This document shows, in pieces, positions 12,032 through 64,000 of a stretch of 64,000 nucleotides of DNA. Location: the NCBI GenBank assembly GCA_002269645.1, contig NIVC01001364.1, forward strand, positions 124,001 through 188,000, given 5' to 3'. The notes beneath the pieces are model-generated. The model did not search any database, was not told where the DNA came from, and saw only the letters and a program-made list of their open reading frames with translations. Within the stretch, counting starts at the first letter, position 1; the number at the start of each line of letters is the position of its first letter. This stretch comes from Macrostomum lignano (lineage: Eukaryota). The position numbers and the translations under genes are program-made.

Positions 12032-12112
<81 letters not shown>

Positions 12113-12902: not shown

Positions 12903-19140
<6,238 letters not shown>

Positions 19141-20721: not shown

Positions 20722-20783
<62 letters not shown>

Positions 20784-34288: not shown

Positions 34289-35492
34289 ATTGTCTACTGT
34301 AGGGCGTATGCCGATTATTAACAGATAGTCCAATAGACGTGTCTAAGCTGATATCTAAATTTACAAAAAGCAGACAATTGAAAAAATGGATTCAATAATG
34401 AAATTCTAAAAATAAGTGCATTAAATTATCAATACGAGTAAAACTCAAACTCAAAGCATTGTTCTCCAGACATGATTATTATTGGGTGTGAAACTGTACT
34501 ATGACCCAGTGTATATTCCCACTGTATATTCTCAAAGCGTTAAAAAGGCTCAACTAAAAGTCCTAGGCAGATGGGATAGAAACAAGTTACTTTTATTAAT
34601 ATTCCAAGACTACTATTCCCCAGCAGACACAGGACACAGGGAGATTACAGCTGAAAGATTAGGGAATAAACTTTGTTTTACTCATAGTCCGCCATAAAAT
34701 TGATTGAAGAATAATAATCCGCGCAATCTGCCTGCCGGTTTTGGAAAATGAATTTAGTCAAGAGCTCCCCGACCCATCCAAGCGGTAAGTAAGACTTCCG
34801 TCTTCAAAGGTCTTAAGGTCTGGGGGGAGCTGCGGGAAAGCTAGAGCAAAGAGATGTTGCGTGTCGCAATGGTCTAGTTAGTTAAAGTCAATTAGCCGCT
34901 ATTGAGGACCCCTGACGAAAATACTGCACATATCTTTAGCCCTGTGTGGGAGGTTGGAAGCCGAAACTATGCCAAAAGTTCCATATTTCGAAAAATTAAT
35001 TTTGGATCCGATTCTATTCTTCATCAAGCACAGGGGCCGCGTGTTCTATCTTGGGGACATGTTGTCAAAAAATCCTTCTAAAGGAGATTAAAGAAAAAGA
35101 CAAAGAGAAGCCGAGTCAAAGCAAAGAGCGAGGATATTCCGAGACGGTCGCACTTCCGCTGCCCCAGAGTGTAGGGACAATCTCCATCTACTTATACCCC
35201 TGATTAGATCCGCAATTCTTCTTGGGTTCCTGGAGTTCTCGAATGTGGCAAGTCCTGGGCGAGTCCGAAATCGAATAATACGCCAATTCCCTGGGCGGCT
35301 CCTCAAATGCTCGAATGGAATGAACGCCTGTTCAGTGTATGCAGAAGAAATGTATGACAGTTCGTTTAGATAATACTATATACACAGTTGAGCCCTATCA
35401 GTGCGTTTCACGAATGATTGTTGCTTGTACATACAAGCTAGTAAAAGTACAATTGCGCAAGCTGCAAAACAACAACAACAACAACAACAACA

Positions 35493-35830
35493 AGTCGCTT
35501 GGACGGACCAGGCCGGCGCGGTGATACAAAGCCGCGTTGGTCACTCGCTCGTAGCCGATCTTGAAGGCGGCGCGCAGCAGGCCAGCGTGCACCGCGTCAA
35601 CTTGTTGCTCGAGCGACTTTGTCGGCGTCCAGGTCTCGGCGTTGTACAGCAGAACGGTCTCGATCACCGCCTGGAACAACGCCGCCCTCTGGCGGTCAGG
35701 TAAGGCCTCGGACTGCAGGACTGCCCTCACAGAACGAAAGGCAGCCCAGGCAAGCCCGCGGCGACGCCGCAAATCCTCGCGGACGCCGGGAACCAGACCG
35801 CCGAGGTAGACGAACTGCTGATAACGCGGA
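35493..35830 (-). mobile_element. Fragment of a non-LTR retrotransposon (RTE-like) ORF2, end of RT and downstream region
   Basis: FVYLGG...RRRRGLAWAAF...VIETVLLYNAETWT...LLRAA matches the FxYLG and LLYxxETW motifs C-terminal to LINE RT domains. Truncated, and abuts a (CAA)n run. Confidence 0.8.
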
Positions 35831-36458
35831 AGCTGTAAAAAGAACGATTGTAACGTTCCATCAACGTCATCGGTCATGGCATGTGGCCACGACCACGAGG
35901 CATGTGGAGCTGTAGTAGGCATGTGGATGATGTGGCGGGCCAGCTGGTGTGGTACAGCTGGTCGCTTGAACTGATCAGGCGATTGATCAGGACTGAGTAT
36001 GCGTCACACTACCCAGAAGATAAAATTATTTCTAATACATTCTGCAGCGCGAAACAAATGTCTGTCCTAGTACGCACTAGCGCATTTAATTCAGCGAAGA
36101 ACAATAGTGGAAAATGTGGCGTCTGCTTGCTCACTGTCAATAAGAACAGGGAGAGACAAGTGCTGGCGTACTTGCTTTGCAAATACTCGAATTAGGAATC
36201 TTACTCCGCGCAAGGGAGAAACAGATAGCATCCGACGTGTCGTATTATCAGAGCTGAAAAAACCTTCATAAGTGCAACTCAATGCACTCATCTTGAACCC
36301 TTTGCACGCAGAAACAATGGGTCTACATACTTCCCACAGCCCTTTTTCTCTTTAAATAACTTAGGAACTCATTTCTTCCTGCTTGCGAAGCTGATACTTC
36401 AATCCTTATCTAACCCTTGTCTCCAATTTTGTCGATAGCCTAACAATCGCAGCACCCT

Positions 36459-40971: not shown

Positions 40972-41184
<213 letters not shown>

Positions 41185-42314
41185 GTTAGTGTATGTGTGT
41201 TTGCGTAGACTCTCCGTCGGTTTAAAAGCCTCGTTAGCGGGACCTTTCGATTACATGGACCCTTTAAGTGGACCACTTTAAATTTCCTTGATGGGAAGTA
41301 CAGAGAGGGTTTATCTTGACTGACTGCATAGTCTGAAAGGCCAAAGTGTGGCCAAAGTCCCTCTACTTAAATTAGTTTAGATTTTAAGTATTGAGTATTT
41401 TAGTTTACAAGGACCTTTTAGCACAGTCCACCCAAACCACATCGCTGAGGTCCACCTAACCCGAAAACAGACAAATTTCACACATACATAGTGTATGTTT
41501 TGTTTGTATGAAAACTTATTTTTTTATGATATAGCTCTTTAAAATGCGTGTTTAAGCACATTGGGGCATTTTTGAGTTGCAGAAGCAAGCTTTCTAAACA
41601 GGCCGAAGTGATTGGAATGTAAAATAAAATTGAAGTTTCTGCTACAAACGAAGCTCCGATGTAGCCCATAATAACTAAAAATTCACGAGATGGTTTTATT
41701 TATTACTTGTGGTTTCTGAAACAAAACTGTTCACTAATATTCCTGTCGCTATCATGCTTGGAATAAATGCTTCATCAAGTGTTGATTTTAGAGAACCTAG
41801 ATTGAAGGCTATGCATGCTATGCATTTCTCATGCTGCATTTGCAGCATTGCTTAATTTAAGGAGACATAAAGACAAGAGCCCTGCTTACAGCACGGACTC
41901 CTAAAATAGTTTGTGTGCTTTATATTCAAACGTTTACAGCTTCGGCAACCGATAGGATAGGGCTGAATAATGAAACTTTAAAAGCCGAACCATCCTGACT
42001 GAGGTCCAAGCAAACCCCAAAGCTCATCAGCCAATCCTGTGCTTAAACGGACAGTCAAGAATGGGGTGGTTTAACTTTCATTCCTTACTGTCCGTCCGTT
42101 TGAACGTTGGTCATTTCCCTCTCTCCCTCCGAAGGGCTCTTATTGGTCTGTAGCTGGCTTAATCATCAAGGTCGAGGGTCTGAAATAGAGGGTCAACGTA
42201 AACATCTTCCTAATCACAAAAACAGACCAATTTCCAACCTCAAACAAGACTTCAACTTGAATTAGTTGGCCTCACAAGTTGGTTCTGCCAACTGGTTGTC
42301 CTTAACACGCCAGC

Positions 42315-43659
42315 ATGCAGAAAAAAAAGCCCCAAGCTAGTAGGCGTTTCTACGTTGAAAGGATTATCAAGTGCACGAAAAAGAAGCTCTACATAAAGTG
42401 GAAAGGATATTCTAGGTGAGTTTCAAAAGATTTATTCATCACTGCACTCTATTTATTATATATACTAAGAGTTGTTTCCATACGGCCATATCGGTTCGGC
42501 TAATAAACAGTGCTTCCATATTTTAGCAATCAAAATTCTTGGGAGCCACGAAGCAACATACCAACAAGTGTGATTCAAAGTCTGCATTCATCTTGCGGTA
42601 AGAATTTTTAGTTATCACGTGTAATAATCTTATTAAATAATTGACCGTCTAACTTCTGTGTCAGAAAAAAATGACAATCTAACTCTCTTTAAAAATCTAC
42701 CAAATTCAAAACATTCCAGAAAAATGCTTCCCGCCGAACGAGCAGCAGAAAACGATGACGGTAGGAACTCCTGACTTAACTGTTACTTAGATGTATGCCA
42801 CTTCATTCCGCAATCGAATCTTAAGGCACGATTTCATTCGAAAGCATTCCAATCTGAGAGGTGGGGTCCAGCTAAACCCTCATTGAATGTCGTTCACATT
42901 GACTGTGGGTGCTTCAAGCATCGACTGCCAAACATACTTTCAGACATGGGGTCCAGCTAAACCCTCATTGAATGTCGTTCACATTGACTGTGGGTGCTTC
43001 AAGCATCGACTGCCAAACATACTTTCAGACATGGGGTCCAGCTAAACCCTCATTGATTGTCGTTCACATTGAGTGTGGATGCTTCAAGCACCGACTGCCA
43101 AACATACTTTCAGACATGGGGTCCAGCTAAACCCTCATTGATTGTCGTTCACATTGAGTGTGGATGCTTCAAGCACTGACTGCCAAACAGACTTTCAGAC
43201 ATGGGATCCAGCTGAATCCTCATTGAGTCATAATATGTTTACATTAGTTCATCAAAATCAATCATTGTGCAGATGGGCAGCGACGTGACCATCCCACAAG
43301 CAGAGGGATCTTCTGCTGATGCTGACGCTGGCGACAGCGAACCGTGTGCATCTCGCGATGAGTCGAGTGTAGAGAAGGCGGCTACGAAGAAGACGACTTC
43401 CGTTCATAAGTCGCGTGAACAGCTCTCAGCATCGGCCAGGGTGTCGAGAGCTACTCAAGAGGCAGCGGCTGCTGGACAAACCCGGAAAAACCATCCTGGA
43501 GACAAGAAGAGCTCTCCTAGTACCTTGGCGCTCCAGTCATCGAAGGAGAATGCTATGGTTGAGGAATGCGACTCAAGTGCTGCTGATCTCATGATCACGT
43601 CATCTGCTAACAAAATACAAGACCGGAAACCGTCACCACAGCGTCAGCATTTTGAATCG
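42315..43659 (+). CDS. Chromodomain-containing protein, copy 1 (partial); exons 42315-42415, 42527-42597, 42665-42760, 42791-42860, 43248 (or 43273)-43659
   Basis: Exons 1+2 splice (AG|GTGAG...ttttag|C) to give FYVERIIKCTKKKLYIKWKGYSSNQNSWEPRSNI, a chromodomain with F, W and Y at the aromatic-cage positions. Downstream exons join in frame with phases 1, 1, 2. Exons 3-4 are less certain because intron 3 would be only 30 nt. Confidence 0.75.
42861..43247. repeat. 85-bp minisatellite monomers forming the predicted intron 4
   Basis: ggggtccagctaaaccctcattg... starts at 42863, 42948, 43033 and 43118. Confidence 0.95.
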
Positions 43660-46600
43660 GTGAGCATTGCTGAGTTGAGTTACACTAACGCTGGAAAAGT
43701 GCATTCGCTTTACTTAATGAATATCATTTTTATTGGGCCAAAAATATGCTGCAGCTTTCAATGTCTTAGTTTCGATTGTAAAAAAGCAAACTTTATCATG
43801 ACGTATGCCAAGTCAGCACAATCAATCAAATTTCAGCATATTTGTCGCGGGTCCAGCTAAACCCTCATTGAATGTTTCACATTGACTGTGGGTGCTTCAA
43901 GCATCGACTGCCAAACATACTTTCAGACATGGGGTCCAGCTAAACCCTCATTGAATGTTTCACATTGCCTGTGGGTGCTTCAAGCATCGACTGCCAAACA
44001 TACTTTCAGACATGGGGTCGTCCAGCTAAACCCTCATTGATTGTCGTTCACATTGAGTGTGGATGCTTCAAGCATCGACTGCCAAACATACTTTCAGACA
44101 TGGGGTCCAGCTAAACCCTCATTGAATGCTTCACATTGACTGTGGGTGCTTCAAGCATCGACTGCCAAACATACTTTCAGACATGGGGTCCAGCTAAACC
44201 CTCATTGATTGTCGTTCACATTGAGTGTGGATGCTTCAAGCACCGACTGCCAAACATACTTTTAGACATGGGGTCCAGCTAAACCCTCATTGAATGTTTC
44301 ACATTGACTGTGGGTGCTTCAAGCACCGACTGCCAAACATACTTTCAGACATGGGGTCCAGCTAAACCCTCATTGAATGTTTCACATTGACTGTGGGTGC
44401 TTCAAGCACCGACTGCCAAACATACTTTCAGACATGGGGTCCAGCTAAACCCTCATTGATTGTCGTTCACATTGAGTGTGGATGCTTCAAGCACTGACTG
44501 CCAAACAGACTTTCAGACATGGGATCCAGCTGAATCCTCATTGAGTCATAATATGTTTACATTAGTTCATCAAAATCAATCATTGTGCAGATGGGCAGCG
44601 ACGTGACCATCCCACAAGCAGAGGGATCTTCTGCTGATGCTGACGCTGGCGACAGCGAACCGTGTGCATCTCGCGATGAGTCGAGTGTAGAGAAGGCGGC
44701 TACGAAGAAGACGACTTCCGTTCATAAGTCGCGTGAACAGCTCTCAGCATCGGCCAGGGTGACGAGAGCTACTCAAGAGGCAGCGGCTGCTGGACAAACC
44801 CGGAAAAACCATCCTGGAGACAAGAAGAGCTCTCCTAGTACCTTGGCGCTCCAGTCATCGAAGGAGAATGCTATGGTTGAGGAATGCGACTCAAGTGCTG
44901 CTGATCTCATGATCACGTCATCTGCTAACAAAATACAAGACCGGAAACCGTCACCACAGCGTCAGCATTTTGAATCGGTGAGCATTGCTGAGTTGAGTTA
45001 CACTAACGCTGGAAAAGTGCATTCGCTTTACTTAATGAATATCATTTTTATTGGGCCAAAAATATGCTGCAGCTTTCAATGTCTTAGTTTCGATTGTAAA
45101 AAAGCAAACTTTATCATGACGTATGCCAAGTCAGCACAATCAATCAAATTTCAGCATATTTGTCGCGGGTCCAGCTAAACCCTCATTGAATGTTTCACAT
45201 TGACTGTGGGTGCTTCAAGCATCGACTGCCAAACATACTTTCAGACATGGGGTCCAGCTAAACCCTCATTGAATGTTTCACATTGCCTGTGGGTGCTTCA
45301 AGCATCGACTGCCAAACATACTTTCAGACATGGGGTCGTCCAGCTAAACCCTCATTGATTGTCGTTCACATTGAGTGTGGATGCTTCAAGCATCGACTGC
45401 CAAACATACTTTCAGACATGGGGTCCAGCTAAACCCTCATTGAATGCTTCACATTGACTGTGGGTGCTTCAAGCATCGACTGCCAAACATACTTTCAGAC
45501 ATGGGGTCCAGCTAAACCCTCATTGATTGTCGTTCACATTGAGTGTGGATGCTTCAAGCACCGACTGCCAAACATACTTTTAGACATGGGGTCCAGCTAA
45601 ACCCTCATTGAATGTTTCACATTGACTGTGGGTGCTTCAAGCACCGACTGCCAAACATACTTTCAGACATGGGGTCCAGCTAAACCCTCATTGAATGTTT
45701 CACATTGACTGTGGGTGCTTCAAGCACCGACTGCCAAACATACTTTCAGACATGGGGTCCAGCTAAACCCTCATTGATTGTCGTTCACATTGAGTGTGGA
45801 TGCTTCAAGCACTGACTGCCAAACAGACTTTCAGACATGGGATCCAGCTGAATCCTCATTGAGTCATAATATGTTTACATTAGTTCATCAAAATCAATCA
45901 TTGTGCAGATGGGCAGCGACGTGACCATCCCACAAGCAGAGGGATCTTCTGCTGATGCTGACGCTGGCGACAGCGAACCGTGTGCATCTCGCGATGAGTC
46001 GAGTGTAGAGAAGGCGGCTACGAAGAAGACGACTTCCGTTCATAAGTCGCGTGAACAGCTCTCAGCATCGGCCAGGGTGACGAGAGCTACTCAAGAGGCA
46101 GCGGCTGCTGGACAAACCCGGAAAAACCATCCTGGAGACAAGAAGAGCTCTCCTAGTACCTTGGCGCTCCAGTCATCGAAGGAGAATGCTATGGTTGAGG
46201 AATGCGACTCAAGTGCTGCTGATCTCATGATCACGTCATCTGCTAACAAAATACAAGACCGGAAACCGTCACCACAGCGTCAGCATTTTGAATCGGTGAG
46301 CATTGCTGAGTTGAGTTACACTAACGCTGGAAAAGTGCATTCGCTTTACTTAATGAATATCATTTTTATTGGGCCAAAAATATGCTGCAGCTTTCAATGT
46401 CTTAGTTTCGATTGTAAAAAAGCAAACTTTATCATGACGTATGCCAAGTCAGCACAATCAATCAAATTTCAGCATATTTGTCGCGGGTCCAGCTAAACCC
46501 TCATTGAATGTTTCACATTGACTGTGGGTGCTTCAAGCATCGACTGCCAAACATACTTTCAGACATGGGGTCCAGCTAAACCCTCATTGAATGTTTCACA

Positions 46601-47710
46601 TTGCCTGTGGGTGCTTCAAGCATCGACTGCCAAACATACTTTCAGACATGGGGTCGTCCAGCTAAACCCTCATTGATTGTCGTTCACATTGAGTGTGGAT
46701 GCTTCAAGCATCGACTGCCAAACATACTTTCAGACATGGGGTCCAGCTAAACCCTCATTGAATGCTTCACATTGACTGTGGGTGCTTCAAGCATCGACTG
46801 CCAAACATACTTTCAGACATGGGGTCCAGCTAAACCCTCATTGATTGTCGTTCACATTGAGTGTGGATGCTTCAAGCACCGACTGCCAAACATACTTTTA
46901 GACATGGGGTCCAGCTAAACCCTCATTGAATGTTTCACATTGACTGTGGGTGCTTCAAGCACCGACTGCCAAACATACTTTCAGACATGGGGTCCAGCTA
47001 AACCCTCATTGAATGTTTCACATTGACTGTGGGTGCTTCAAGCACCGACTGCCAAACATACTTTCAGACATGGGGTCCAGCTAAACCCTCATTGATTGTC
47101 GTTCACATTGAGTGTGGATGCTTCAAGCACTGACTGCCAAACAGACTTTCAGACATGGGATCCAGCTGAATCCTCATTGAGTCATAATATGTTTACATTA
47201 GTTCATCAAAATCAATCATTGTGCAGATGGGCAGCGACGTGACCATCCCACAAGCAGAGGGATCTTCTGCTGATGCTGACGCTGGCGACAGCGAACCGTG
47301 TGCATCTCGCGATGAGTCGAGTGTAGAGAAGGCGGCTACGAAGAAGACGACTTCCGTTCATAAGTCGCGTGAACAGCTCTCAGCATCGGCCAGGGTGACG
47401 AGAGCTACTCAAGAGGCAGCGGCTGCTGGACAAACCCGGAAAAACCATCCTGGAGACAAGAAGAGCTCTCCTAGTACCTTGGCGCTCCAGTCATCGAAGG
47501 AGAATGCTATGGTTGAGGAATGCGACTCAAGTGCTGCTGATCTCATGATCACGTCATCTGCTAACAAAATACAAGACCGGAAACCGTCACCACAGCGTCA
47601 GCATTTTGAATCGGTGAGCATTGCTGAGTTGAGTTACACTAACGCTGGAAAAGTGCATTCGCTTTACTTAATGAATATCATTTTTATTGGGCCAAAAATA
47701 TGCTGCAGCT
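43248..47710 (+). repeat. Macrosatellite block 1: 4 copies of a 1318-bp unit (387-nt exon, ~200-bp unique intron, 83-86-bp monomers); last copy truncated
   Basis: Identical 197-aa ORFs at 43267, 44585, 45903 and 47221. Confidence 0.97.
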
Positions 47711-47737
47711 ATGAGATGGTTTTATTTCACGAGAATC

Positions 47738-49793
47738 GAGATGGTTTTATTTATTACTTGTGGTTTCTGAAACAAAACTGTTCACTAATATTCCTGTCGC
47801 TATCATGCTTGGAATAAATGCTTCATCAAGTGTTGATTTTAGAGAACCTAGATTGAAGGCTATGCATGCTATGCATTTCTCATGCTGCATTTGCAGCATT
47901 GCTTAATTTAAGGAGACATAAAGACAAGAGCCCTGCTTACAGCACGGACTCCTAAAATAGTTTGTGTGCTTTATATTCAAACGTTTACAGCTTCGGCAAC
48001 CGATAGGATAGGGCTGAATAATGAAACTTTAAAAGCCGAACCATCCTGACTGAGGTCCAAGCAAACCCCAAAGCTCATCAGCCAATCCTGTGCTTAAACG
48101 GACAGTCAAGAATGGGGTGGTTTAACTTTCATTCCTTACTGTCCGTCCGTTTGAACGTTGGTCATTTCCCTCTCTCCCTCCGAAGGGCTCTTATTGGTCT
48201 GTAGCTGGCTTAATCATCAAGGTCGAGGGTCTGAAATAGAGGGTCAACGTAAACATCTTCCTAATCACAAAAACAGACCAATTTCCAACCTCAAACAAGA
48301 CTTCAACTTGAATTAGTTGGCCTCACAAGTTGGTTCTGCCAACTGGTTGTCCTTAACACGCCAGCATGCAGAAAAAAAAGCCCCAAGCTAGTAGGCGTTT
48401 CTACGTTGAAAGGATTATCAAGTGCACGAAAAAGAAGCTCTACATAAAGTGGAAAGGATATTCTAGGTGAGTTTCAAAAGATTTATTCATCACTGCACTC
48501 TATTTATTATATATACTAAGAGTTGTTTCCATACGGCCATATCGGTTCGGCTAATAAACAGTGCTTCCATATTTTAGCAATCAAAATTCTTGGGAGCCAC
48601 GAAGCAACATACCAACAAGTGTGATTCAAAGTCTGCATTCATCTTGCGGTAAGAATTTTTAGTTATCACGTGTAATAATCTTATTAAATAATTGACCGTC
48701 TAACTTCTGTGTCAGAAAAAAATGACAATCTAACTCTCTTTAAAAATCTACCAAATTCAAAACATTCCAGAAAAATGCTTCCCGCCGAACGAGCAGCAGA
48801 AAACGATGACGGTAGGAACTCCTGACTTAACTGTTACTTAGATGTATGCCACTTCATTCCGCAATCGAATCTTAAGGCACGATTTCATTCGAAAGCATTC
48901 CAATCTGAGAGGTGGGGTCCAGCTAAACCCTCATTGAATGTCGTTCACATTGACTGTGGGTGCTTCAAGCATCGACTGCCAAACATACTTTCAGACATGG
49001 GGTCCAGCTAAACCCTCATTGAATGTCGTTCACATTGACTGTGGGTGCTTCAAGCATCGACTGCCAAACATACTTTCAGACATGGGGTCCAGCTAAACCC
49101 TCATTGAATGTTTCACATTGACTGTGGGTGCTTCAAGCATCGACTGCCAAACATACTTTCAGACATGGGGTCCAGCTAAACCCTCATTGATTGTCGTTCA
49201 CATTGAGTGTGGATGCTTCAAGCACCGACTGCCAAACATACTTTCAGACATGGGGTCCAGCTAAACCCTCATTGATTGTCGTTCACATTGAGTGTGGATG
49301 CTTCAAGCACTGACTGCCAAACAGACTTTCAGACATGGGATCCAGCTGAATCCTCATTGAGTCATAATATGTTTACATTAGTTCATCAAAATCAATCATT
49401 GTGCAGATGGGCAGCGACGTGACCATCCCACAAGCAGAGGGATCTTCTGCTGATGCTGACGCTGGCGACAGCGAACCGTGTGCATCTCGCGATGAGTCGA
49501 GTGTAGAGAAGGCGGCTACGAAGAAGACGACTTCCGTTCATAAGTCGCGTGAACAGCTCTCAGCATCGGCCAGGGTGTCGAGAGCTACTCAAGAGGCAGC
49601 GGCTGCTGGACAAACCCGGAAAAACCATCCTGGAGACAAGAAGAGCTCTCCTAGTACCTTGGCGCTCCAGTCATCGAAGGAGAATGCTATGGTTGAGGAA
49701 TGCGACTCAAGTGCTGCTGATCTCATGATCACGTCATCTGCTAACAAAATACAAGACCGGAAACCGTCACCACAGCGTCAGCATTTTGAATCG
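47738..49793 (+). repeat. Second copy of 41687-43659 (tandem segmental duplication, offset 6051 bp)
   Basis: Sequence from gagatggttttatttattac onward repeats essentially identically, with one extra 83-bp monomer. Confidence 0.97.
48366..49793 (+). CDS. Chromodomain-containing protein, copy 2; exons 48366-48466, 48578-48648, 48716-48811, 48842-48911, 49382 (or 49407)-49793, then repeated exons
   Basis: Same sequence and splice signals as copy 1. The 3' end lies beyond the window. Confidence 0.75.
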
Positions 49794-52700
49794 GTGAGCA
49801 TTGCTGAGTTGAGTTACACTAACGCTGGAAAAGTGCATTCGCTTTACTTAATGAATATCATTTTTATTGGGCCAAAAATATGCTGCAGCTTTCAATGTCT
49901 TAGTTTCGATTGTAAAAAAGCAAACTTTATCATGACGTATGCCAAGTCAGCACAATCAATCAAATTTCAGCATATTTGTCGCGGGTCCAGCTAAACCCTC
50001 ATTGAATGTTTCACATTGACTGTGGGTGCTTCAAGCATCGACTGCCAAACATACTTTCAGACATGGGGTCCAGCTAAACCCTCATTGAATGTTTCACATT
50101 GCCTGTGGGTGCTTCAAGCATCGACTGCCAAACATACTTTCAGACATGGGGTCGTCCAGCTAAACCCTCATTGATTGTCGTTCACATTGAGTGTGGATGC
50201 TTCAAGCATCGACTGCCAAACATACTTTCAGACATGGGGTCCAGCTAAACCCTCATTGAATGCTTCACATTGACTGTGGGTGCTTCAAGCATCGACTGCC
50301 AAACATACTTTCAGACATGGGGTCCAGCTAAACCCTCATTGATTGTCGTTCACATTGAGTGTGGATGCTTCAAGCACCGACTGCCAAACATACTTTTAGA
50401 CATGGGGTCCAGCTAAACCCTCATTGAATGTTTCACATTGACTGTGGGTGCTTCAAGCACCGACTGCCAAACATACTTTCAGACATGGGGTCCAGCTAAA
50501 CCCTCATTGAATGTTTCACATTGACTGTGGGTGCTTCAAGCACCGACTGCCAAACATACTTTCAGACATGGGGTCCAGCTAAACCCTCATTGATTGTCGT
50601 TCACATTGAGTGTGGATGCTTCAAGCACTGACTGCCAAACAGACTTTCAGACATGGGATCCAGCTGAATCCTCATTGAGTCATAATATGTTTACATTAGT
50701 TCATCAAAATCAATCATTGTGCAGATGGGCAGCGACGTGACCATCCCACAAGCAGAGGGATCTTCTGCTGATGCTGACGCTGGCGACAGCGAACCGTGTG
50801 CATCTCGCGATGAGTCGAGTGTAGAGAAGGCGGCTACGAAGAAGACGACTTCCGTTCATAAGTCGCGTGAACAGCTCTCAGCATCGGCCAGGGTGACGAG
50901 AGCTACTCAAGAGGCAGCGGCTGCTGGACAAACCCGGAAAAACCATCCTGGAGACAAGAAGAGCTCTCCTAGTACCTTGGCGCTCCAGTCATCGAAGGAG
51001 AATGCTATGGTTGAGGAATGCGACTCAAGTGCTGCTGATCTCATGATCACGTCATCTGCTAACAAAATACAAGACCGGAAACCGTCACCACAGCGTCAGC
51101 ATTTTGAATCGGTGAGCATTGCTGAGTTGAGTTACACTAACGCTGGAAAAGTGCATTCGCTTTACTTAATGAATATCATTTTTATTGGGCCAAAAATATG
51201 CTGCAGCTTTCAATGTCTTAGTTTCGATTGTAAAAAAGCAAACTTTATCATGACGTATGCCAAGTCAGCACAATCAATCAAATTTCAGCATATTTGTCGC
51301 GGGTCCAGCTAAACCCTCATTGAATGTTTCACATTGACTGTGGGTGCTTCAAGCATCGACTGCCAAACATACTTTCAGACATGGGGTCCAGCTAAACCCT
51401 CATTGAATGTTTCACATTGCCTGTGGGTGCTTCAAGCATCGACTGCCAAACATACTTTCAGACATGGGGTCCAGCTAAACCCTCATTTATTGTTTCACAT
51501 TGCCTGTGGGTGCTTCAAGCATCGACTGCCAAACATACTTTCAGACATGGGGTCCAGCTAAACCCTCATTGATTGTCGTTCACATTGACTGTGGGTGCTT
51601 CAAGCATCGACTGCCAAACATACTTTCAGACATGGGGTCCAGCTAAACCCTCATTGATTGTCGTTCACATTGAGTGTGGATGCTTCAAGCACCGACTGCC
51701 AAACATACTTTTAGACATGGGGTCCAGCTAAACCCTCATTGAATGTTTCACATTGACTGTGGGTGCTTCAAGCACCGACTGCCAAACATACTTTCAGACA
51801 TGGGGTCCAGCTAAACCCTCATTGATTGTCGTTCACATTGAGTGTGGATGCTTCAAGCACTGACTGCCAAACAGACTTTCAGACATGGGATCCAGCTGAA
51901 TCCTCATTGAGTCATAATATGTTTACATTAGTTCATCAAAATCAATCATTGTGCAGATGGGCAGCGACGTGACCATCCCACAAGCAGAGGGATCTTCTGC
52001 TGATGCTGACGCTGGCGACAGCGAACCGTGTGCATCTCGCGATGAGTCGAGTGTAGAGAAGGCGGCTACGAAGAAGACGACTTCCGTTCATAAGTCGCGT
52101 GAACAGCTCTCAGCATCGGCCAGGGTGACGAGAGCTACTCAAGAGGCAGCGGCTGCTGGACAAACCCGGAAAAACCATCCTGGAGACAAGAAGAGCTCTC
52201 CTAGTACCTTGGCGCTCCAGTCATCGAAGGAGAATGCTATGGTTGAGGAATGCGACTCAAGTGCTGCTGATCTCATGATCACGTCATCTGCTAACAAAAT
52301 ACAAGACCGGAAACCGTCACCACAGCGTCAGCATTTTGAATCGGTGAGCATTGCTGAGTTGAGTTACACTAACGCTGGAAAAGTGCATTCGCTTTACTTA
52401 ATGAATATCATTTTTATTGGGCCAAAAATATGCTGCAGCTTTCAATGTCTTAGTTTCGATTGTAAAAAAGCAAACTTTATCATGACGTATGCCAAGTCAG
52501 CACAATCAATCAAATTTCAGCATATTTGTCGCGGGTCCAGCTAAACCCTCATTGAATGTTTCACATTGACTGTGGGTGCTTCAAGCATCGACTGCCAAAC
52601 ATACTTTCAGACATGGGGTCCAGCTAAACCCTCATTGAATGTTTCACATTGCCTGTGGGTGCTTCAAGCATCGACTGCCAAACATACTTTCAGACATGGG

Positions 52701-55700
52701 GTCCAGCTAAACCCTCATTTATTGTTTCACATTGCCTGTGGGTGCTTCAAGCATCGACTGCCAAACATACTTTCAGACATGGGGTCCAGCTAAACCCTCA
52801 TTGATTGTCGTTCACATTGACTGTGGGTGCTTCAAGCATCGACTGCCAAACATACTTTCAGACATGGGGTCCAGCTAAACCCTCATTGATTGTCGTTCAC
52901 ATTGAGTGTGGATGCTTCAAGCACCGACTGCCAAACATACTTTTAGACATGGGGTCCAGCTAAACCCTCATTGAATGTTTCACATTGACTGTGGGTGCTT
53001 CAAGCACCGACTGCCAAACATACTTTCAGACATGGGGTCCAGCTAAACCCTCATTGATTGTCGTTCACATTGAGTGTGGATGCTTCAAGCACTGACTGCC
53101 AAACAGACTTTCAGACATGGGATCCAGCTGAATCCTCATTGAGTCATAATATGTTTACATTAGTTCATCAAAATCAATCATTGTGCAGATGGGCAGCGAC
53201 GTGACCATCCCACAAGCAGAGGGATCTTCTGCTGATGCTGACGCTGGCGACAGCGAACCGTGTGCATCTCGCGATGAGTCGAGTGTAGAGAAGGCGGCTA
53301 CGAAGAAGACGACTTCCGTTCATAAGTCGCGTGAACAGCTCTCAGCATCGGCCAGGGTGACGAGAGCTACTCAAGAGGCAGCGGCTGCTGGACAAACCCG
53401 GAAAAACCATCCTGGAGACAAGAAGAGCTCTCCTAGTACCTTGGCGCTCCAGTCATCGAAGGAGAATGCTATGGTTGAGGAATGCGACTCAAGTGCTGCT
53501 GATCTCATGATCACGTCATCTGCTAACAAAATACAAGACCGGAAACCGTCACCACAGCGTCAGCATTTTGAATCGGTGAGCATTGCTGAGTTGAGTTACA
53601 CTAACGCTGGAAAAGTGCATTCGCTTTACTTAATGAATATCATTTTTATTGGGCCAAAAATATGCTGCAGCTTTCAATGTCTTAGTTTCGATTGTAAAAA
53701 AGCAAACTTTATCATGACGTATGCCAAGTCAGCACAATCAATCAAATTTCAGCATATTTGTCGCGGGTCCAGCTAAACCCTCATTGAATGTTTCACATTG
53801 ACTGTGGGTGCTTCAAGCATCGACTGCCAAACATACTTTCAGACATGGGGTCCAGCTAAACCCTCATTGAATGTTTCACATTGCCTGTGGGTGCTTCAAG
53901 CATCGACTGCCAAACATACTTTCAGACATGGGGTCCAGCTAAACCCTCATTTATTGTTTCACATTGCCTGTGGGTGCTTCAAGCATCGACTGCCAAACAT
54001 ACTTTCAGACATGGGGTCCAGCTAAACCCTCATTGATTGTCGTTCACATTGACTGTGGGTGCTTCAAGCATCGACTGCCAAACATACTTTCAGACATGGG
54101 GTCCAGCTAAACCCTCATTGATTGTCGTTCACATTGAGTGTGGATGCTTCAAGCACCGACTGCCAAACATACTTTTAGACATGGGGTCCAGCTAAACCCT
54201 CATTGAATGTTTCACATTGACTGTGGGTGCTTCAAGCACCGACTGCCAAACATACTTTCAGACATGGGGTCCAGCTAAACCCTCATTGATTGTCGTTCAC
54301 ATTGAGTGTGGATGCTTCAAGCACTGACTGCCAAACAGACTTTCAGACATGGGATCCAGCTGAATCCTCATTGAGTCATAATATGTTTACATTAGTTCAT
54401 CAAAATCAATCATTGTGCAGATGGGCAGCGACGTGACCATCCCACAAGCAGAGGGATCTTCTGCTGATGCTGACGCTGGCGACAGCGAACCGTGTGCATC
54501 TCGCGATGAGTCGAGTGTAGAGAAGGCGGCTACGAAGAAGACGACTTCCGTTCATAAGTCGCGTGAACAGCTCTCAGCATCGGCCAGGGTGTCGAGAGCT
54601 ACTCAAGAGGCAGCGGCTGCTGGACAAACCCGGAAAAACCATCCTGGAGACAAGAAGAGCTCTCCTAGTACCTTGGCGCTCCAGTCATCGAAGGAGAATG
54701 CTATGGTTGAGGAATGCGACTCAAGTGCTGCTGATCTCATGATCACGTCATCTGCTAACAAAATACAAGACCGGAAACCGTCACCACAGCGTCAGCATTT
54801 TGAATCGGTGAGCATTGCTGAGTTGAGTTACACTAACGCTGGAAAAGTGCATTCGCTTTACTTAATGAATATCATTTTTATTGGGCCAAAAATATGCTGC
54901 AGCTTTCAATGTCTTAGTTTCGATTGTAAAAAAGCAAACTTTATCATGACGTATGCCAAGTCAGCACAATCAATCAAATTTCAGCATATTTGTCGCGGGT
55001 CCAGCTAAACCCTCATTGAATGTTTCACATTGACTGTGGGTGCTTCAAGCATCGACTGCCAAACATACTTTCAGACATGGGGTCCAGCTAAACCCTCATT
55101 GAATGTTTCACATTGCCTGTGGGTGCTTCAAGCATCGACTGCCAAACATACTTTCAGACATGGGGTCCAGCTAAACCCTCATTGATTGTCGTTCACATTG
55201 ACTGTGGGTGCTTCAAGCATCGACTGCCAAACATACTTTCAGACATGGGGTCCAGCTAAACCCTCATTGAATGTTTCACATTGACTGTGGGTGCTTCAAG
55301 CATCGACTGCCAAACATACTTTCAGACATGGGGTCCAGCTAAACCCTCATTGATTGTCGTTCACATTGAGTGTGGATGCTTCAAGCACCGACTGCCAAAC
55401 ATACTTTCAGACATGGGGTCCAGCTAAACCCTCATTGATTGTCGTTCACATTGAGTGTGGATGCTTCAAGCACTGACTGCCAAACAGACTTTCAGACATG
55501 GGATCCAGCTGAATCCTCATTGAGTCATAATATGTTTACATTAGTTCATCAAAATCAATCATTGTGCAGATGGGCAGCGACGTGACCATCCCACAAGCAG
55601 AGGGATCTTCTGCTGATGCTGACGCTGGCGACAGCGAACCGTGTGCATCTCGCGATGAGTCGAGTGTAGAGAAGGCGGCTACGAAGAAGACGACTTCCGT

Positions 55701-58700
55701 TCATAAGTCGCGTGAACAGCTCTCAGCATCGGCCAGGGTGTCGAGAGCTACTCAAGAGGCAGCGGCTGCTGGACAAACCCGGAAAAACCATCCTGGAGAC
55801 AAGAAGAGCTCTCCTAGTACCTTGGCGCTCCAGTCATCGAAGGAGAATGCTATGGTTGAGGAATGCGACTCAAGTGCTGCTGATCTCATGATCACGTCAT
55901 CTGCTAACAAAATACAAGACCGGAAACCGTCACCACAGCGTCAGCATTTTGAATCGGTGAGCATTGCTGAGTTGAGTTACACTAACGCTGGAAAAGTGCA
56001 TTCGCTTTACTTAATGAATATCATTTTTATTGGGCCAAAAATATGCTGCAGCTTTCAATGTCTTAGTTTCGATTGTAAAAAAGCAAACTTTATCATGACG
56101 TATGCCAAGTCAGCACAATCAATCAAATTTCAGCATATTTGTCGCGGGTCCAGCTAAACCCTCATTGAATGTTTCACATTGACTGTGGGTGCTTCAAGCA
56201 TCGACTGCCAAACATACTTTCAGACATGGGGTCCAGCTAAACCCTCATTGAATGTTTCACATTGCCTGTGGGTGCTTCAAGCATCGACTGCCAAACATAC
56301 TTTCAGACATGGGGTCCAGCTAAACCCTCATTTATTGTTTCACATTGCCTGTGGGTGCTTCAAGCATCGACTGCCAAACATACTTTCAGACATGGGGTCC
56401 AGCTAAACCCTCATTGATTGTCGTTCACATTGACTGTGGGTGCTTCAAGCATCGACTGCCAAACATACTTTCAGACATGGGGTCCAGCTAAACCCTCATT
56501 GATTGTCGTTCACATTGAGTGTGGATGCTTCAAGCACCGACTGCCAAACATACTTTTAGACATGGGGTCCAGCTAAACCCTCATTGAATGTTTCACATTG
56601 ACTGTGGGTGCTTCAAGCACCGACTGCCAAACATACTTTCAGACATGGGGTCCAGCTAAACCCTCATTGATTGTCGTTCACATTGAGTGTGGATGCTTCA
56701 AGCACTGACTGCCAAACAGACTTTCAGACATGGGATCCAGCTGAATCCTCATTGAGTCATAATATGTTTACATTAGTTCATCAAAATCAATCATTGTGCA
56801 GATGGGCAGCGACGTGACCATCCCACAAGCAGAGGGATCTTCTGCTGATGCTGACGCTGGCGACAGCGAACCGTGTGCATCTCGCGATGAGTCGAGTGTA
56901 GAGAAGGCGGCTACGAAGAAGACGACTTCCGTTCATAAGTCGCGTGAACAGCTCTCAGCATCGGCCAGGGTGACGAGAGCTACTCAAGAGGCAGCGGCTG
57001 CTGGACAAACCCGGAAAAACCATCCTGGAGACAAGAAGAGCTCTCCTAGTACCTTGGCGCTCCAGTCATCGAAGGAGAATGCTATGGTTGAGGAATGCGA
57101 CTCAAGTGCTGCTGATCTCATGATCACGTCATCTGCTAACAAAATACAAGACCGGAAACCGTCACCACAGCGTCAGCATTTTGAATCGGTGAGCATTGCT
57201 GAGTTGAGTTACACTAACGCTGGAAAAGTGCATTCGCTTTACTTAATGAATATCATTTTTATTGGGCCAAAAATATGCTGCAGCTTTCAATGTCTTAGTT
57301 TCGATTGTAAAAAAGCAAACTTTATCATGACGTATGCCAAGTCAGCACAATCAATCAAATTTCAGCATATTTGTCGCGGGTCCAGCTAAACCCTCATTGA
57401 ATGTTTCACATTGACTGTGGGTGCTTCAAGCATCGACTGCCAAACATACTTTCAGACATGGGGTCCAGCTAAACCCTCATTGAATGTTTCACATTGCCTG
57501 TGGGTGCTTCAAGCATCGACTGCCAAACATACTTTCAGACATGGGGTCCAGCTAAACCCTCATTTATTGTTTCACATTGCCTGTGGGTGCTTCAAGCATC
57601 GACTGCCAAACATACTTTCAGACATGGGGTCCAGCTAAACCCTCATTGATTGTCGTTCACATTGACTGTGGGTGCTTCAAGCATCGACTGCCAAACATAC
57701 TTTCAGACATGGGGTCCAGCTAAACCCTCATTGAATGTTTCACATTGACTGTGGGTGCTTCAAGCATCGACTGCCAAACATACTTTCAGACATGGGGTCC
57801 AGCTAAACCCTCATTGATTGTCGTTCACATTGAGTGTGGATGCTTCAAGCACCGACTGCCAAACATACTTTCAGACATGGGGTCCAGCTAAACCCTCATT
57901 GATTGTCGTTCACATTGAGTATGATGCTTCAAGCACTGACTGCCAAACAGACTTTCAGACATGGGATCCAGCTGAATCCTCATTGAGTCATAATATGTTT
58001 ACATTAGTTCATCAAAATCAATCATTGTGCAGATGGGCAGCGACGTGACCATCCCACAAGCAGAGGGATCTTCTGCTGATGCTGACGCTGGCGACAGCGA
58101 ACCGTGTGCATCTCGCGATGAGTCGAGTGTAGAGAAGGCGGCTACGAAGAAGACGACTTCCGTTCATAAGTCGCGTGAACAGCTCTCAGCATCGGCCAGG
58201 GTGTCGAGAGCTACTCAAGAGGCAGCGGCTGCTGGACAAACCCGGAAAAACCATCCTGGAGACAAGAAGAGCTCTCCTAGTACCTTGGCGCTCCAGTCAT
58301 CGAAGGAGAATGCTATGGTTGAGGAATGCGACTCAAGTGCTGCTGATCTCATGATCACGTCATCTGCTAACAAAATACAAGACCGGAAACCGTCACCACA
58401 GCGTCAGCATTTTGAATCGGTGAGCATTGCTGAGTTGAGTTACACTAACGCTGGAAAAGTGCATTCGCTTTACTTAATGAATATCATTTTTATTGGGCCA
58501 AAAATATGCTGCAGCTTTCAATGTCTTAGTTTCGATTGTAAAAAAGCAAACTTTATCATGACGTATGCCAAGTCAGCACAATCAATCAAATTTCAGCATA
58601 TTTGTCGCGGGTCCAGCTAAACCCTCATTGAATGTTTCACATTGACTGTGGGTGCTTCAAGCATCGACTGCCAAACATACTTTCAGACATGGGGTCCAGC

Positions 58701-61700
58701 TAAACCCTCATTGAATGTTTCACATTGCCTGTGGGTGCTTCAAGCATCGACTGCCAAACATACTTTCAGACATGGGGTCCAGCTAAACCCTCATTGATTG
58801 TTTCACATTGAGTGTGGTGCTTCAAGCATCGACTGCCAAACATACTTTCAGACATGGGGTCCAGCTAAACCCTCATTGAATTGCTTCACATTGACTGTGG
58901 GTGCTTCAAGCATCGACTGCCAAACATACTTTCAGACATGGGGTCCAGCTAAACCCTCATTGATTGTCGTTCACATTGAGTGTGGATGCTTCAAGCACGA
59001 CTGCCAAACATACTTTTAGACATGGGGTCCAGCTAAACCCTCATTGAATGTTTCACATTGACTGTGGGTGCTTCAAGCACCGACTGCCAAACATACTTTC
59101 AGACATGGGGTCCAGCTAAACCCTCATTGAATGTTTCACATTGACTGTGGGTGCTTCAAGCACCGACTGCCAAACATACTTTCAGACATGGGGTCCAGCT
59201 AAACCCTCATTGATTGTCGTTCACATTGAGTGTGGATGCTTCAAGCACTGACTGCCAAACAGACTTTCAGACATGGGATCCAGCTGAATCCTCATTGAGT
59301 CATAATATGTTTACATTAGTTCATCAAAATCAATCATTGTGCAGATGGGCAGCGACGTGACCATCCCACAAGCAGAGGGATCTTCTGCTGATGCTGACGC
59401 TGGCGACAGCGAACCGTGTGCATCTCGCGATGAGTCGAGTGTAGAGAAGGCGGCTACGAAGAAGACGACTTCCGTTCATAAGTCGCGTGAACAGCTCTCA
59501 GCATCGGCCAGGGTGACGAGAGCTACTCAAGAGGCAGCGGCTGCTGGACAAACCCGGAAAAACCATCCTGGAGACAAGAAGAGCTCTCCTAGTACCTTGG
59601 CGCTCCAGTCATCGAAGGAGAATGCTATGGTTGAGGAATGCGACTCAAGTGCTGCTGATCTCATGATCACGTCATCTGCTAACAAAATACAAGACCGGAA
59701 ACCGTCACCACAGCGTCAGCATTTTGAATCGGTGAGCATTGCTGAGTTGAGTTACACTAACGCTGGAAAAGTGCATTCGCTTTACTTAATGAATATCATT
59801 TTTATTGGGCCAAAAATATGCTGCAGCTTTCAATGTCTTAGTTTCGATTGTAAAAAAGCAAACTTTATCATGACGTATGCCAAGTCAGCACAATCAATCA
59901 AATTTCAGCATATTTGTCGCGGGTCCAGCTAAACCCTCATTGAATGTTTCACATTGACTGTGGGTGCTTCAAGCATCGACTGCCAAACATACTTTCAGAC
60001 ATGGGGTCCAGCTAAACCCTCATTGAATGTTTCACATTGCCTGTGGGTGCTTCAAGCATCGACTGCCAAACATACTTTCAGACATGGGGTCCAGCTAAAC
60101 CCTCATTTATTGTTTCACATTGCCTGTGGGTGCTTCAAGCATCGACTGCCAAACATACTTTCAGACATGGGGTCCAGCTAAACCCTCATTGATTGTCGTT
60201 CACATTGACTGTGGGTGCTTCAAGCATCGACTGCCAAACATACTTTCAGACATGGGGTCCAGCTAAACCCTCATTGAATGTTTCACATTGACTGTGGGTG
60301 CTTCAAGCATCGACTGCCAAACATACTTTCAGACATGGGGTCCAGCTAAACCCTCATTGATTGTCGTTCACATTGAGTGTGGATGCTTCAAGCACCGACT
60401 GCCAAACATACTTTCAGACATGGGGTCCAGCTAAACCCTCATTGATTGTCGTTCACATTGAGTGTGATGCTTCAAGCACTGACTGCCAAACAGACTTTCA
60501 GACATGGGATCCAGCTGAATCCTCATTGAGTCATAATATGTTTACATTAGTTCATCAAAATCAATCATTGTGCAGATGGGCAGCGACGTGACCATCCCAC
60601 AAGCAGAGGGATCTTCTGCTGATGCTGACGCTGGCGACAGCGAACCGTGTGCATCTCGCGATGAGTCGAGTGTAGAGAAGGCGGCTACGAAGAAGACGAC
60701 TTCCGTTCATAAGTCGCGTGAACAGCTCTCAGCATCGGCCAGGGTGACGAGAGCTACTCAAGAGGCAGCGGCTGCTGGACAAACCCGGAAAAACCATCCT
60801 GGAGACAAGAAGAGCTCTCCTAGTACCTTGGCGCTCCAGTCATCGAAGGAGAATGCTATGGTTGAGGAATGCGACTCAAGTGCTGCTGATCTCATGATCA
60901 CGTCATCTGCTAACAAAATACAAGACCGGAAACCGTCACCACAGCGTCAGCATTTTGAATCGGTGAGCATTGCTGAGTTGAGTTACACTAACGCTGGAAA
61001 AGTGCATTCGCTTTACTTAATGAATATCATTTTTATTGGGCCAAAAATATGCTGCAGCTTTCAATGTCTTAGTTTCGATTGTAAAAAAGCAAACTTTATC
61101 ATGACGTATGCCAAGTCAGCACAATCAATCAAATTTCAGCATATTTGTCGCGGGTCCAGCTAAACCCTCATTGAATGTTTCACATTGACTGTGGGTGCTT
61201 CAAGCATCGACTGCCAAACATACTTTCAGACATGGGGTCCAGCTAAACCCTCATTGAATGTTTCACATTGCCTGTGGGTGCTTCAAGCATCGACTGCCAA
61301 ACATACTTTCAGACATGGGGTCCAGCTAAACCCTCATTTATTGTTTCACATTGCCTGTGGGTGCTTCAAGCATCGACTGCCAAACATACTTTCAGACATG
61401 GGGTCCAGCTAAACCCTCATTGATTGTCGTTCACATTGACTGTGGGTGCTTCAAGCATCGACTGCCAAACATACTTTCAGACATGGGGTCCAGCTAAACC
61501 CTCATTGATTGTCGTTCACATTGAGTGTGGATGCTTCAAGCACCGACTGCCAAACATACTTTTAGACATGGGGTCCAGCTAAACCCTCATTGAATGTTTC
61601 ACATTGACTGTGGGTGCTTCAAGCACCGACTGCCAAACATACTTTCAGACATGGGGTCCAGCTAAACCCTCATTGATTGTCGTTCACATTGAGTGTGGAT

Positions 61701-64000
61701 GCTTCAAGCACTGACTGCCAAACAGACTTTCAGACATGGGATCCAGCTGAATCCTCATTGAGTCATAATATGTTTACATTAGTTCATCAAAATCAATCAT
61801 TGTGCAGATGGGCAGCGACGTGACCATCCCACAAGCAGAGGGATCTTCTGCTGATGCTGACGCTGGCGACAGCGAACCGTGTGCATCTCGCGATGAGTCG
61901 AGTGTAGAGAAGGCGGCTACGAAGAAGACGACTTCCGTTCATAAGTCGCGTGAACAGCTCTCAGCATCGGCCAGGGTGACGAGAGCTACTCAAGAGGCAG
62001 CGGCTGCTGGACAAACCCGGAAAAACCATCCTGGAGACAAGAAGAGCTCTCCTAGTACCTTGGCGCTCCAGTCATCGAAGGAGAATGCTATGGTTGAGGA
62101 ATGCGACTCAAGTGCTGCTGATCTCATGATCACGTCATCTGCTAACAAAATACAAGACCGGAAACCGTCACCACAGCGTCAGCATTTTGAATCGGTGAGC
62201 ATTGCTGAGTTGAGTTACACTAACGCTGGAAAAGTGCATTCGCTTTACTTAATGAATATCATTTTTATTGGGCCAAAAATATGCTGCAGCTTTCAATGTC
62301 TTAGTTTCGATTGTAAAAAAGCAAACTTTATCATGACGTATGCCAAGTCAGCACAATCAATCAAATTTCAGCATATTTGTCGCGGGTCCAGCTAAACCCT
62401 CATTGAATGTTTCACATTGACTGTGGGTGCTTCAAGCATCGACTGCCAAACATACTTTCAGACATGGGGTCCAGCTAAACCCTCATTGAATGTTTCACAT
62501 TGCCTGTGGGTGCTTCAAGCATCGACTGCCAAACATACTTTCAGACATGGGGTCCAGCTAAACCCTCATTTATTGTTTCACATTGCCTGTGGGTGCTTCA
62601 AGCATCGACTGCCAAACATACTTTCAGACATGGGGTCCAGCTAAACCCTCATTGATTGTCGTTCACATTGACTGTGGGTGCTTCAAGCATCGACTGCCAA
62701 ACATACTTTCAGACATGGGGTCCAGCTAAACCCTCATTGATTGTCGTTCACATTGAGTGTGGATGCTTCAAGCACCGACTGCCAAACATACTTTTAGACA
62801 TGGGGTCCAGCTAAACCCTCATTGAATGTTTCACATTGACTGTGGGTGCTTCAAGCACCGACTGCCAAACATACTTTCAGACATGGGGTCCAGCTAAACC
62901 CTCATTGATTGTCGTTCACATTGAGTGTGGATGCTTCAAGCACTGACTGCCAAACAGACTTTCAGACATGGGATCCAGCTGAATCCTCATTGAGTCATAA
63001 TATGTTTACATTAGTTCATCAAAATCAATCATTGTGCAGATGGGCAGCGACGTGACCATCCCACAAGCAGAGGGATCTTCTGCTGATGCTGACGCTGGCG
63101 ACAGCGAACCGTGTGCATCTCGCGATGAGTCGAGTGTAGAGAAGGCGGCTACGAAGAAGACGACTTCCGTTCATAAGTCGCGTGAACAGCTCTCAGCATC
63201 GGCCAGGGTGACGAGAGCTACTCAAGAGGCAGCGGCTGCTGGACAAACCCGGAAAAACCATCCTGGAGACAAGAAGAGCTCTCCTAGTACCTTGGCGCTC
63301 CAGTCATCGAAGGAGAATGCTATGGTTGAGGAATGCGACTCAAGTGCTGCTGATCTCATGATCACGTCATCTGCTAACAAAATACAAGACCGGAAACCGT
63401 CACCACAGCGTCAGCATTTTGAATCGGTGAGCATTGCTGAGTTGAGTTACACTAACGCTGGAAAAGTGCATTCGCTTTACTTAATGAATATCATTTTTAT
63501 TGGGCCAAAAATATGCTGCAGCTTTCAATGTCTTAGTTTCGATTGTAAAAAAGCAAACTTTATCATGACGTATGCCAAGTCAGCACAATCAATCAAATTT
63601 CAGCATATTTGTCGCGGGTCCAGCTAAACCCTCATTGAATGTTTCACATTGACTGTGGGTGCTTCAAGCATCGACTGCCAAACATACTTTCAGACATGGG
63701 GTCCAGCTAAACCCTCATTGAATGTTTCACATTGCCTGTGGGTGCTTCAAGCATCGACTGCCAAACATACTTTCAGACATGGGGTCCAGCTAAACCCTCA
63801 TTTATTGTTTCACATTGCCTGTGGGTGCTTCAAGCATCGACTGCCAAACATACTTTCAGACATGGGGTCCAGCTAAACCCTCATTGATTGTCGTTCACAT
63901 TGACTGTGGGTGCTTCAAGCATCGACTGCCAAACATACTTTCAGACATGGGGTCCAGCTAAACCCTCATTGATTTTCACATTGACTGTGGGTGCTTCAAG
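49382..64000 (+). repeat. Macrosatellite block 2: 12 copies of the exon-plus-minisatellite unit (1149-1318 bp), running off the window
   Basis: ORF copies at 49401, 50719, 51951, 53183, 54415, 55564, 56796, 58027, 59339, 60570, 61802 and 63034. Confidence 0.97.

Follow-up and report, generated by a model that had tools for sequence, protein, structure and literature searches.

We analysed a window of 64,000 nucleotides (nt) from Macrostomum lignano, whose right-hand part holds two identical sets of short exons encoding a chromodomain (heads 1 and 2) together with 16 near-identical copies of a 387-nt exon (units), all of which appear to belong to one copy of a large transposable element. Window positions 32315–64000 correspond to positions 1–31686 of the locus fetched for gene Mlig016835g3 (L002) with 0 mismatches, identifying the window as part of contig NIVC01001364.1 of assembly Mlig_3_7 and the locus as that gene. 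Within the window, head 1 is followed by four units, and then head 2 by twelve units, as listed here in window coordinates unless L002 is named.

40972–41183, forward strand: (TCTG)53 microsatellite, directly adjoining the element on its left
41184–64000, forward strand: window part of the 38,420-bp element copy (L002 8870–47289), including the 5′ non-coding region
41187–41199, forward strand: left 13-bp terminal inverted repeat (TIR), TAGTGTATGTGTG
42315–42760, forward strand: head 1, exons 42315–42415, 42527–42597 and 42720–42760 with GT-AG introns, encoding the 71-amino-acid (aa) chromodomain N-terminus
42862–43226, forward strand: 85-bp minisatellite within intron 3 (4.3 copies), on which unequal exchange has probably acted
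43273–47613, forward strand: block 1, four unit exons at 43273–43659, 44591–44977, 45909–46295 and 47227–47613
47711–47736, forward strand: duplication breakpoint, where unit-intron position 97 is joined to the equivalent of 41686 via ~26 nt of filler
48366–48811, forward strand: head 2, an identical second copy with its ATG at 48366 and exons 48366–48466, 48578–48648 and 48771–48811
49407–63426, forward strand: window part of block 2, twelve unit exons starting at 49407, 50725, 51957, 53189, 54421, 55570, 56802, 58033, 59345, 60576, 61808 and 63040, with eight more units and two terminal exons beyond the window
L002 47272–47284, about 15.6 kb past the window end: right TIR, CACACATACACTA

Joined in frame, the three exons of a head encode a peptide of 71 aa that scored 35.3 bits against the Pfam Chromo profile (PF00385; cut-off 25.1 bits), the score within the full-length protein being 29.2 bits, and its best sequence match was Drosophila HP1 (E about 2e-6). 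Residues F12, W29 and Y32 align to the cage positions Y24, W45 and Y48 of HP1 (structures 6asz and 1kna). Judged by these alignments, the head is an HP1-like chromodomain with aromatic residues at three cage positions, in agreement with a sequence-only reading of this stretch that had placed such a domain in the short exons. The best matches and the three aromatic positions are what the head shares with HP1/CBX proteins, whereas its beta1–beta2 hairpin is four residues shorter and the rest of the protein is unrelated; membership of the HP1 family was rejected, as Pfam found no chromoshadow domain in the 1184-aa protein that the locus encodes. Heads 1 and 2 show 0 differences over the 1176 nt compared and reflect an internal duplication in which a 6,051-bp stretch from 41686 recurs from 47737. 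The filler at 47711–47736 is templated from nearby sequence, for which reason the head-2 junction looks like a real rearrangement breakpoint, and an AATAAA motif lies just past it at 47813. Within head-2 exon 1, a cryptic acceptor (atgcag, cutting at 48371/48372) would preserve the frame (95 + 71 + 41 = 207 nt); head-2 exons 2 and 3 alone would break it.

The 16 unit exons lie exactly where the sequence-only reading had reported them, each of 387 nt, without a stop codon, of phase 0-0, preceded by tgtgcag and followed by gtgagc. Compared with the first copy they carry 0–1 mismatch, the sole variable site being nonsynonymous (S/T, 5 versus 11 copies), and successive copies start 1318, 1232 or 1149 bp apart, with a single interval of 2180 bp; these distances differ from one another by integral numbers of the 83–85-bp minisatellite repeats in the intron. 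Only frame 0 of the unit exon is open, with 3–10 stops in each of the other five frames, and it stayed open in 60 of 20,000 shuffles; the G+C fraction is 0.537 in the exon versus 0.36 and 0.28 in the unique intron sequence on its two sides, and codon position 1 is G-rich. The unit exon is more than a chance open reading frame (ORF). Its 129-aa product is rich in S, A, E, K, D and T, with a single aromatic residue and a position below the charge-hydropathy boundary, a composition that suggests the disordered segment which the sequence-only reading had described. An AlphaFold 2 (AF2) model of the N-terminal 410 aa was uninformative, as there was no alignment depth, and was not counted as evidence of disorder. 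The intactness of the frames, which the sequence-only reading had pointed out, carries no signal of selection: all 15 intact units have the same sequence over the 189 nt of single-copy DNA at the 5′ side of the intron, and the 3′ intron flank is likewise identical across units save for an indel shift in two. Since the exon is no better conserved than the intron, the intact frames indicate recency or homogenisation rather than selection.

Each unit exon (for example that at window 43273) and the terminal exon carry an ATG right after the acceptor (tgtgcag followed by ATG). As spliced-leader trans-splicing is widespread in M. lignano (PMC5730564), each unit acceptor could in principle give an mRNA starting at its own ATG and lacking the chromodomain. 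Some deposited models (P0237 and P0086) do begin at such an ATG.

Beyond the window, the gene continues. The full locus comprises two heads, 24 ORF-intact units (4 + 20), all of them open and with common splice sites, and two terminal exons, so that the sequence-only reading was right about the 16 copies in the window and had missed both the identical second head and the continuation to 24 units. The first terminal exon is long and unit-like for 240 nt before it diverges, and no source for the 3′ part of the unit was found within the element; the second measures 2.2 kb. Together, the two terminal exons encode residues 201–1184, placing the C-terminal coding part entirely outside the window. 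The chromodomain therein forms the N-terminus of an 1184-aa protein with two C2H2-like fingers, encoded by the terminal exons, and a predicted tyrosine-recombinase fold toward the C-terminus, which is at odds with the stand-alone host chromatin reader that had been proposed.

The evidence for the recombinase-like part is structural in the first place. On the 1184-aa protein, Chromo was the only significant Pfam match, accompanied by weak C2H2/Ros-type fingers, and a Foldseek search with the full-length model was weak (E 0.03–0.17) because half of the model is disordered; the search was hence rerun on aa 560–1000, for which AF2 gave a mean predicted local distance difference test (pLDDT) of 87.7 and a predicted template-modelling score (pTM) of 0.70. 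Against the PDB, each of the top 7 matches was a tyrosine recombinase, either XerA or the integron integrase IntI of Vibrio, with probabilities of 0.99–1.0, template-modelling (TM) scores up to 0.52 and ~380–400 aligned columns, the next match having a probability of 0.23. An independent comparison, with a viral structure library, pointed the same way, its top matches being phage XerC and further integrases, nudivirus VLF-1 and a hytrosavirus Tyr-recombinase protein (best E = 5.5e-4). The predicted model thus supports a two-domain core-binding plus catalytic tyrosine-recombinase fold. In the family alignment, NRRR, G838-K839, T908-x-L-R911-K, G936-H937, H942 and Y946-R947 are conserved, at the positions expected of such an enzyme; catalytic residues were assigned by motif order, and the exact catalytic set is putative, though plausible.

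Relatives of the C-terminal 556 aa occur at full length and 30–35% identity in teleosts, beetles, a firefly and many environmental contigs, and one of 34 relatives matches Pfam Phage_integrase (PF00589; E = 1.1e-3). A M. lignano paralog (P0239) is 55% identical over the C-terminal part and has no reader domain, and the N-termini of the relatives differ, one zebrafish member carrying a SET domain and the M. lignano paralog none at all. From these varied N-termini we infer that the chromodomain was added, together with the 129-aa linker, in this element only. Near its C-terminus, the paralog P0239 has a different short coding tandem repeat, KSEPGPGQEDPQKD, in four copies, and disordered regions of proteins in this family may often expand by repeats that keep the frame.

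The gene lies within one discrete segment that is common to three M. lignano loci (L001, L002 and L003), where it is 98–99.7% identical and embedded in unrelated flanks. At all three loci the ends read (TCTG)n-TGT-TAGTGTATGTGTG...CACACATACACTA-GTATG-(TCTG)n, with 10–90 TCTG repeats outside each element end. The inverted repeats are perfect over 13 bp and match at about 21/24 positions with their extension; by our own arithmetic, an inverted 13-mer pair lying no more than ~30 nt from the two ends would arise by chance with a probability of roughly 5e-6. Element lengths are 8,786 bp at L001 (2 units), 15,894 bp at L003 (about 10) and 38,420 bp at L002 (24). That the chromodomain exons sit in a TIR-bounded segment present at three unrelated loci is the transposon outcome that the sequence-only reading had itself named as contrary to its proposal. 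In the region L001 1331–26587, the 8.8-kb element copy lies within a same-strand Ank/ARM gene model of 1454 aa and is therefore probably an intronic insertion.

A rival reading is that of a domesticated or immobile transposon-derived family, spread by segmental duplication or polyploidy and with the array as neutral growth in a host gene. Only 3–4 such copies (g1–g4) are known, the genome is a hidden tetraploid with 180–312 Mb of duplicated sequence (PMC5730564), the gene is transcribed and has multiple introns, and the H of the H-x-x-R motif is not conserved. Such spreading is hard to reconcile, however, with flanks that are unrelated right up to the identical ends, with perfect 13-bp TIRs and a common microsatellite on both sides at all three loci, and with the conservation of catalytic-type R, K, R, H and Y across the family, and we regard it as unlikely, if not negligibly so.

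Overall, we favor, with a probability of about 0.7, the reading that the region covers the 5′ two-thirds of a single copy of a Crypton-like M. lignano DNA transposon, which has a basic size of about 8.8 kb and an acquired N-terminal chromodomain, and that the array arose from minisatellite exchange. The protein from its one multi-exon gene would comprise an HP1-like chromodomain, a disordered linker, two C2H2-like fingers, a helical domain, a tyrosine-recombinase-fold domain and a small C-terminal helical domain. The recombinase would move the element via a circular intermediate, whose junction would place the two 13-bp arms in inverted orientation on either side of a spacer that contains TCTG; inverted arms around a spacer are the layout on which tyrosine recombinases usually act (PMC3212892). 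These joined ends (arm, TCTG spacer, arm) could then recombine with genomic (TCTG)n tracts, and the chromodomain may bias the element toward methylated chromatin, as in chromoviruses.

Cryptons, as described by Goodwin et al. and Kojima & Jurka, are recombinase-only elements with 4–6-bp terminal direct repeats and no inverted repeats, and those of animals match DUF3504 (PMC3212892). The present element resembles them in its single recombinase-type gene without reverse transcriptase (no such domain was found in P0236 or in the element), in its patchy family distribution across animals, and in the 4-bp TCTG at both element ends, as expected for microhomology recombination, even though TCTG here forms long microsatellites rather than a single copy. 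It differs from them in its perfect 13-bp TIRs and the lack of a DUF3504 or Phage_integrase Pfam match, as well as in its chromodomain, C2H2-like fingers, C-terminal helical domain, multiple introns and exon macrosatellite. Plain Crypton membership was rejected on account of the TIRs and the missing DUF3504 match, and we use "Crypton-like" instead. Chromoviruses are Ty3/Gypsy retrotransposons whose integrase carries a chromodomain that presumably steers insertion to methylated chromatin. The likeness to them is that of a mobile element with a chromodomain fused to its integration enzyme, whereas here the enzyme has a predicted tyrosine-recombinase fold instead of being a DDE integrase, the element is no retroelement, and the chromodomain is N-terminal, HP1-like and intron-split. 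A recombinase-type eukaryotic element with short TIRs round a microsatellite core, an apparent (TCTG)n preference and an N-terminal chromodomain is absent from the literature searched; the element would broaden the known range of Crypton-like elements, and in it a DNA transposon of the tyrosine-recombinase kind meets a chromatin-reader module for targeting and a macrosatellite that is also coding sequence, three subjects usually studied separately.

Several points weigh against the transposon reading. The recombinase call rests on a predicted fold and motifs: Pfam, NCBIfam and PDB sequence searches gave no recombinase family above threshold, a family profile against the PDB and a family consensus against Pfam likewise yielded only weak zinc-finger matches, and PF00589, DUF3504 and DUF3435 matched neither the protein nor the family profile or consensus. 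Foldseek E-values are modest (5e-4 to 3e-2), and the H of H-x-x-R appears replaced (T-K-L-R, with T or K at that position). Only three copies of the element were seen, without a recovered empty site or a known circular or excision product, and contigs with distant relatives (L004–L006) showed no inverted repeats or microsatellite flanks. The gene has at least 5 introns, which is unusual for an active transposon, and in the L003 copy the head and one unit are frameshifted, which may reflect decay or sequencing error. Finally, the precise number of units and the duplicated head may be in error, as they come from an old PacBio RSII/Canu assembly.

The structure of the array points to how it may have grown. 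The minisatellite of intron 3 also fills every unit intron and so brackets the linker exon, and 7, 8, 9, 11 or 17 minisatellite copies correspond to unit lengths of 1149, 1232, 1318, 1477 or 1981 bp. With unit length tracking the minisatellite count and the unique parts identical, this is the footprint of unequal exchange or slippage in the minisatellite. Unequal exchange within the 83-bp minisatellite would duplicate the linker exon in 1.15–1.32-kb steps with the frame unbroken, the exon being of phase 0-0 and within a disordered linker, so that the frame is kept at any copy number; the separate 6-kb internal duplication would have given this copy its second promoter and head. An "ECD" variant is present in 22 of the 24 units at L002 and absent at the other two loci, indicating that the expansion took place in situ in this copy after the copies had diverged. 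The array expansion is probably a tolerated by-product rather than a tuned function. As a structural description, the phrase of a satellite and a coding array at once holds, and the locus offers a clean natural example of an intronic minisatellite amplifying a symmetric exon without breaking the gene. A similar case is the LPA kringle IV-2 (KIV-2) repeat, where a 5.5-kb unit with two exons encodes a folded kringle in a host gene and all copies enter the protein (PMC4378929, PMC11515395). Both arrays consist of kb-scale near-identical tandem units with complete in-frame exon sequence and highly variable copy number, which here was seen between three paralogous copies of one assembly (2, about 10 and 24). 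In contrast to KIV-2, the present unit is 1.15–1.32 kb long with one exon that encodes a disordered linker within a transposon, and its inclusion in mRNA is putative.

The size of the array might instead be an artefact, with the 24 units and the second head produced by mis-assembly of noisy long reads. Mlig_3_7 is a 2017 Canu assembly of PacBio RSII reads in which only 64% of bases are error-free by REAPR (PMC5730564), and the units are about 99.9% identical. Against this stand the differently sized arrays with variants of their own at the three loci, the irregular succession of S/T variants and of unit lengths (1149, 1232 and 1318 bp), which is no simple stutter, and the templated filler at the head-2 junction, typical of a real rearrangement. 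Moreover, the independent ML2 gene model P0087 likewise joins a unit to head exon 1. An artefact of this kind therefore seems improbable to us.

An exhaustive HMMER protein search returned three close matches, all from M. lignano and named via exact look-up: PAA76011.1 (P0085, Mlig016835g4), PAA68901.1 (P0236, Mlig016835g3) and PAA73455.1 (P0235, Mlig016835g2). The gene models P0086 and P0087, deposited in UniRef, also match. A word-indexed protein search with the head and two units had returned nothing, a false negative of the word index, which twice missed P0085 and P0236 despite at least 200 residues identical to the query; word-index negatives should not be trusted for low-complexity queries. 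Exact look-up of the unit ORF plus read-through gave no match, and the literature and supplements searched for the gene identifier yielded nothing.

The GenBank annotation derives from a genome-guided RNA-seq assembly and mapped de novo transcripts (PMC5730564), and the head exons and the unit-to-unit junction HFES-MGSD, which the sequence-only reading had anticipated between copies, are therefore RNA-supported at the level of the family rather than for the window's own units. The annotated models hold 1–2 units. In P0235, two neighbouring L003 units with a rare variant in common are spliced together and the one after them is skipped, P0085 skips one of its two units, and P0236 uses one "ESD" unit of 24 and treats ~30 kb of array as intron; this choice of the "ESD" unit suggests that the transcript mapped at L002 came from another copy. 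In P0087, a UniRef/WormBase-type gene model, a unit is joined to a cryptic AG within head-2 exon 1. Short-read assembly may have collapsed repeats in the unit-poor models. The proposal of a tunable repeat array thus held in one respect, in that copy number differs strongly between the loci, and failed in another, in that the annotated mRNAs carry 1–2 units rather than at least 12. These models also call for caution with the annotation, since the deposited record describes an ordinary "hypothetical / chromo domain-containing protein" gene whose 30-kb "intron" really consists of 23 skipped exon copies.

The same data can be set against the idea of a host chromatin-reader gene with a disordered region sized by exon copy number or skipping and an array kept by selection. 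Consistent with such a gene are the significant chromodomain with its aromatic cage positions, the phase 0-0 exon with its disordered composition, the unit-to-unit junctions in RNA-based models, the spliceosomal introns and the survival of the gene in the "coregenes" set, which was filtered against the repeat annotation (PMC5730564). Yet the protein runs on into a predicted tyrosine-recombinase-fold domain, TIRs bound the segment that carries the gene at each of three unrelated loci, the exon copies match one another no better than the intron copies and so show no sign of purifying selection on the array, and the models include 1–2 units only, leaving this idea very improbable in our view.

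Were the array fully included, the product would run to 4,151 aa with all 24 units, or to 3,635 aa if it began at head 2 and held the 20 units that follow. One can picture, though we give it little credence, a fully spliced array in which the element copies make chromodomain-recombinases of ~1,300–4,150 aa with a disordered tether set by the exon number. The second head of this copy could then lead either to a protein with two chromodomains, by way of the cryptic acceptor that keeps the frame, or to a product from block 1 with the chromodomain alone, and either of these might regulate where or whether the element integrates. If true, the fully spliced array would represent a transposon whose targeting module evolves by macrosatellite dynamics.

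The remainder of the window holds other features. Rfam and tRNA scans of the window were both empty. On the reverse strand, an ORF at 326–709 corresponds to the C-terminal two-thirds of an EFHD2/swiprosin-type EF-hand protein, with best matches 45–54% identical in insects, molluscs and echinoderms (the word-indexed search did not return a M. lignano protein), and a GC-rich ORF of 169 aa at 22607–23116 encodes an F-box-like domain (Pfam 38.1 bits) and is probably an exon of a host gene. A further reverse-strand ORF, at 35398–35922, resembled the tail of a non-LTR reverse transcriptase, but Pfam did not confirm this and the ORF is left unassigned. A second macrosatellite at 10088–22000 consists of four tandem 2.8–3.2-kb units, each with a long GA-rich tract and a unique part that is 85–97% identical between units; 1.8 kb of its sequence recurs at about 90% identity beside the L001 element (L001 24780–26587) and hence belongs to a dispersed repeat family. 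Window positions 1–41000 show an exceptional density of 20–85-bp minisatellites and tetranucleotide microsatellites, such as (ATCT)70 and (TCTG)53, which fits the report that simple and tandem repeats make up 15% of the M. lignano genome (PMC5730564).

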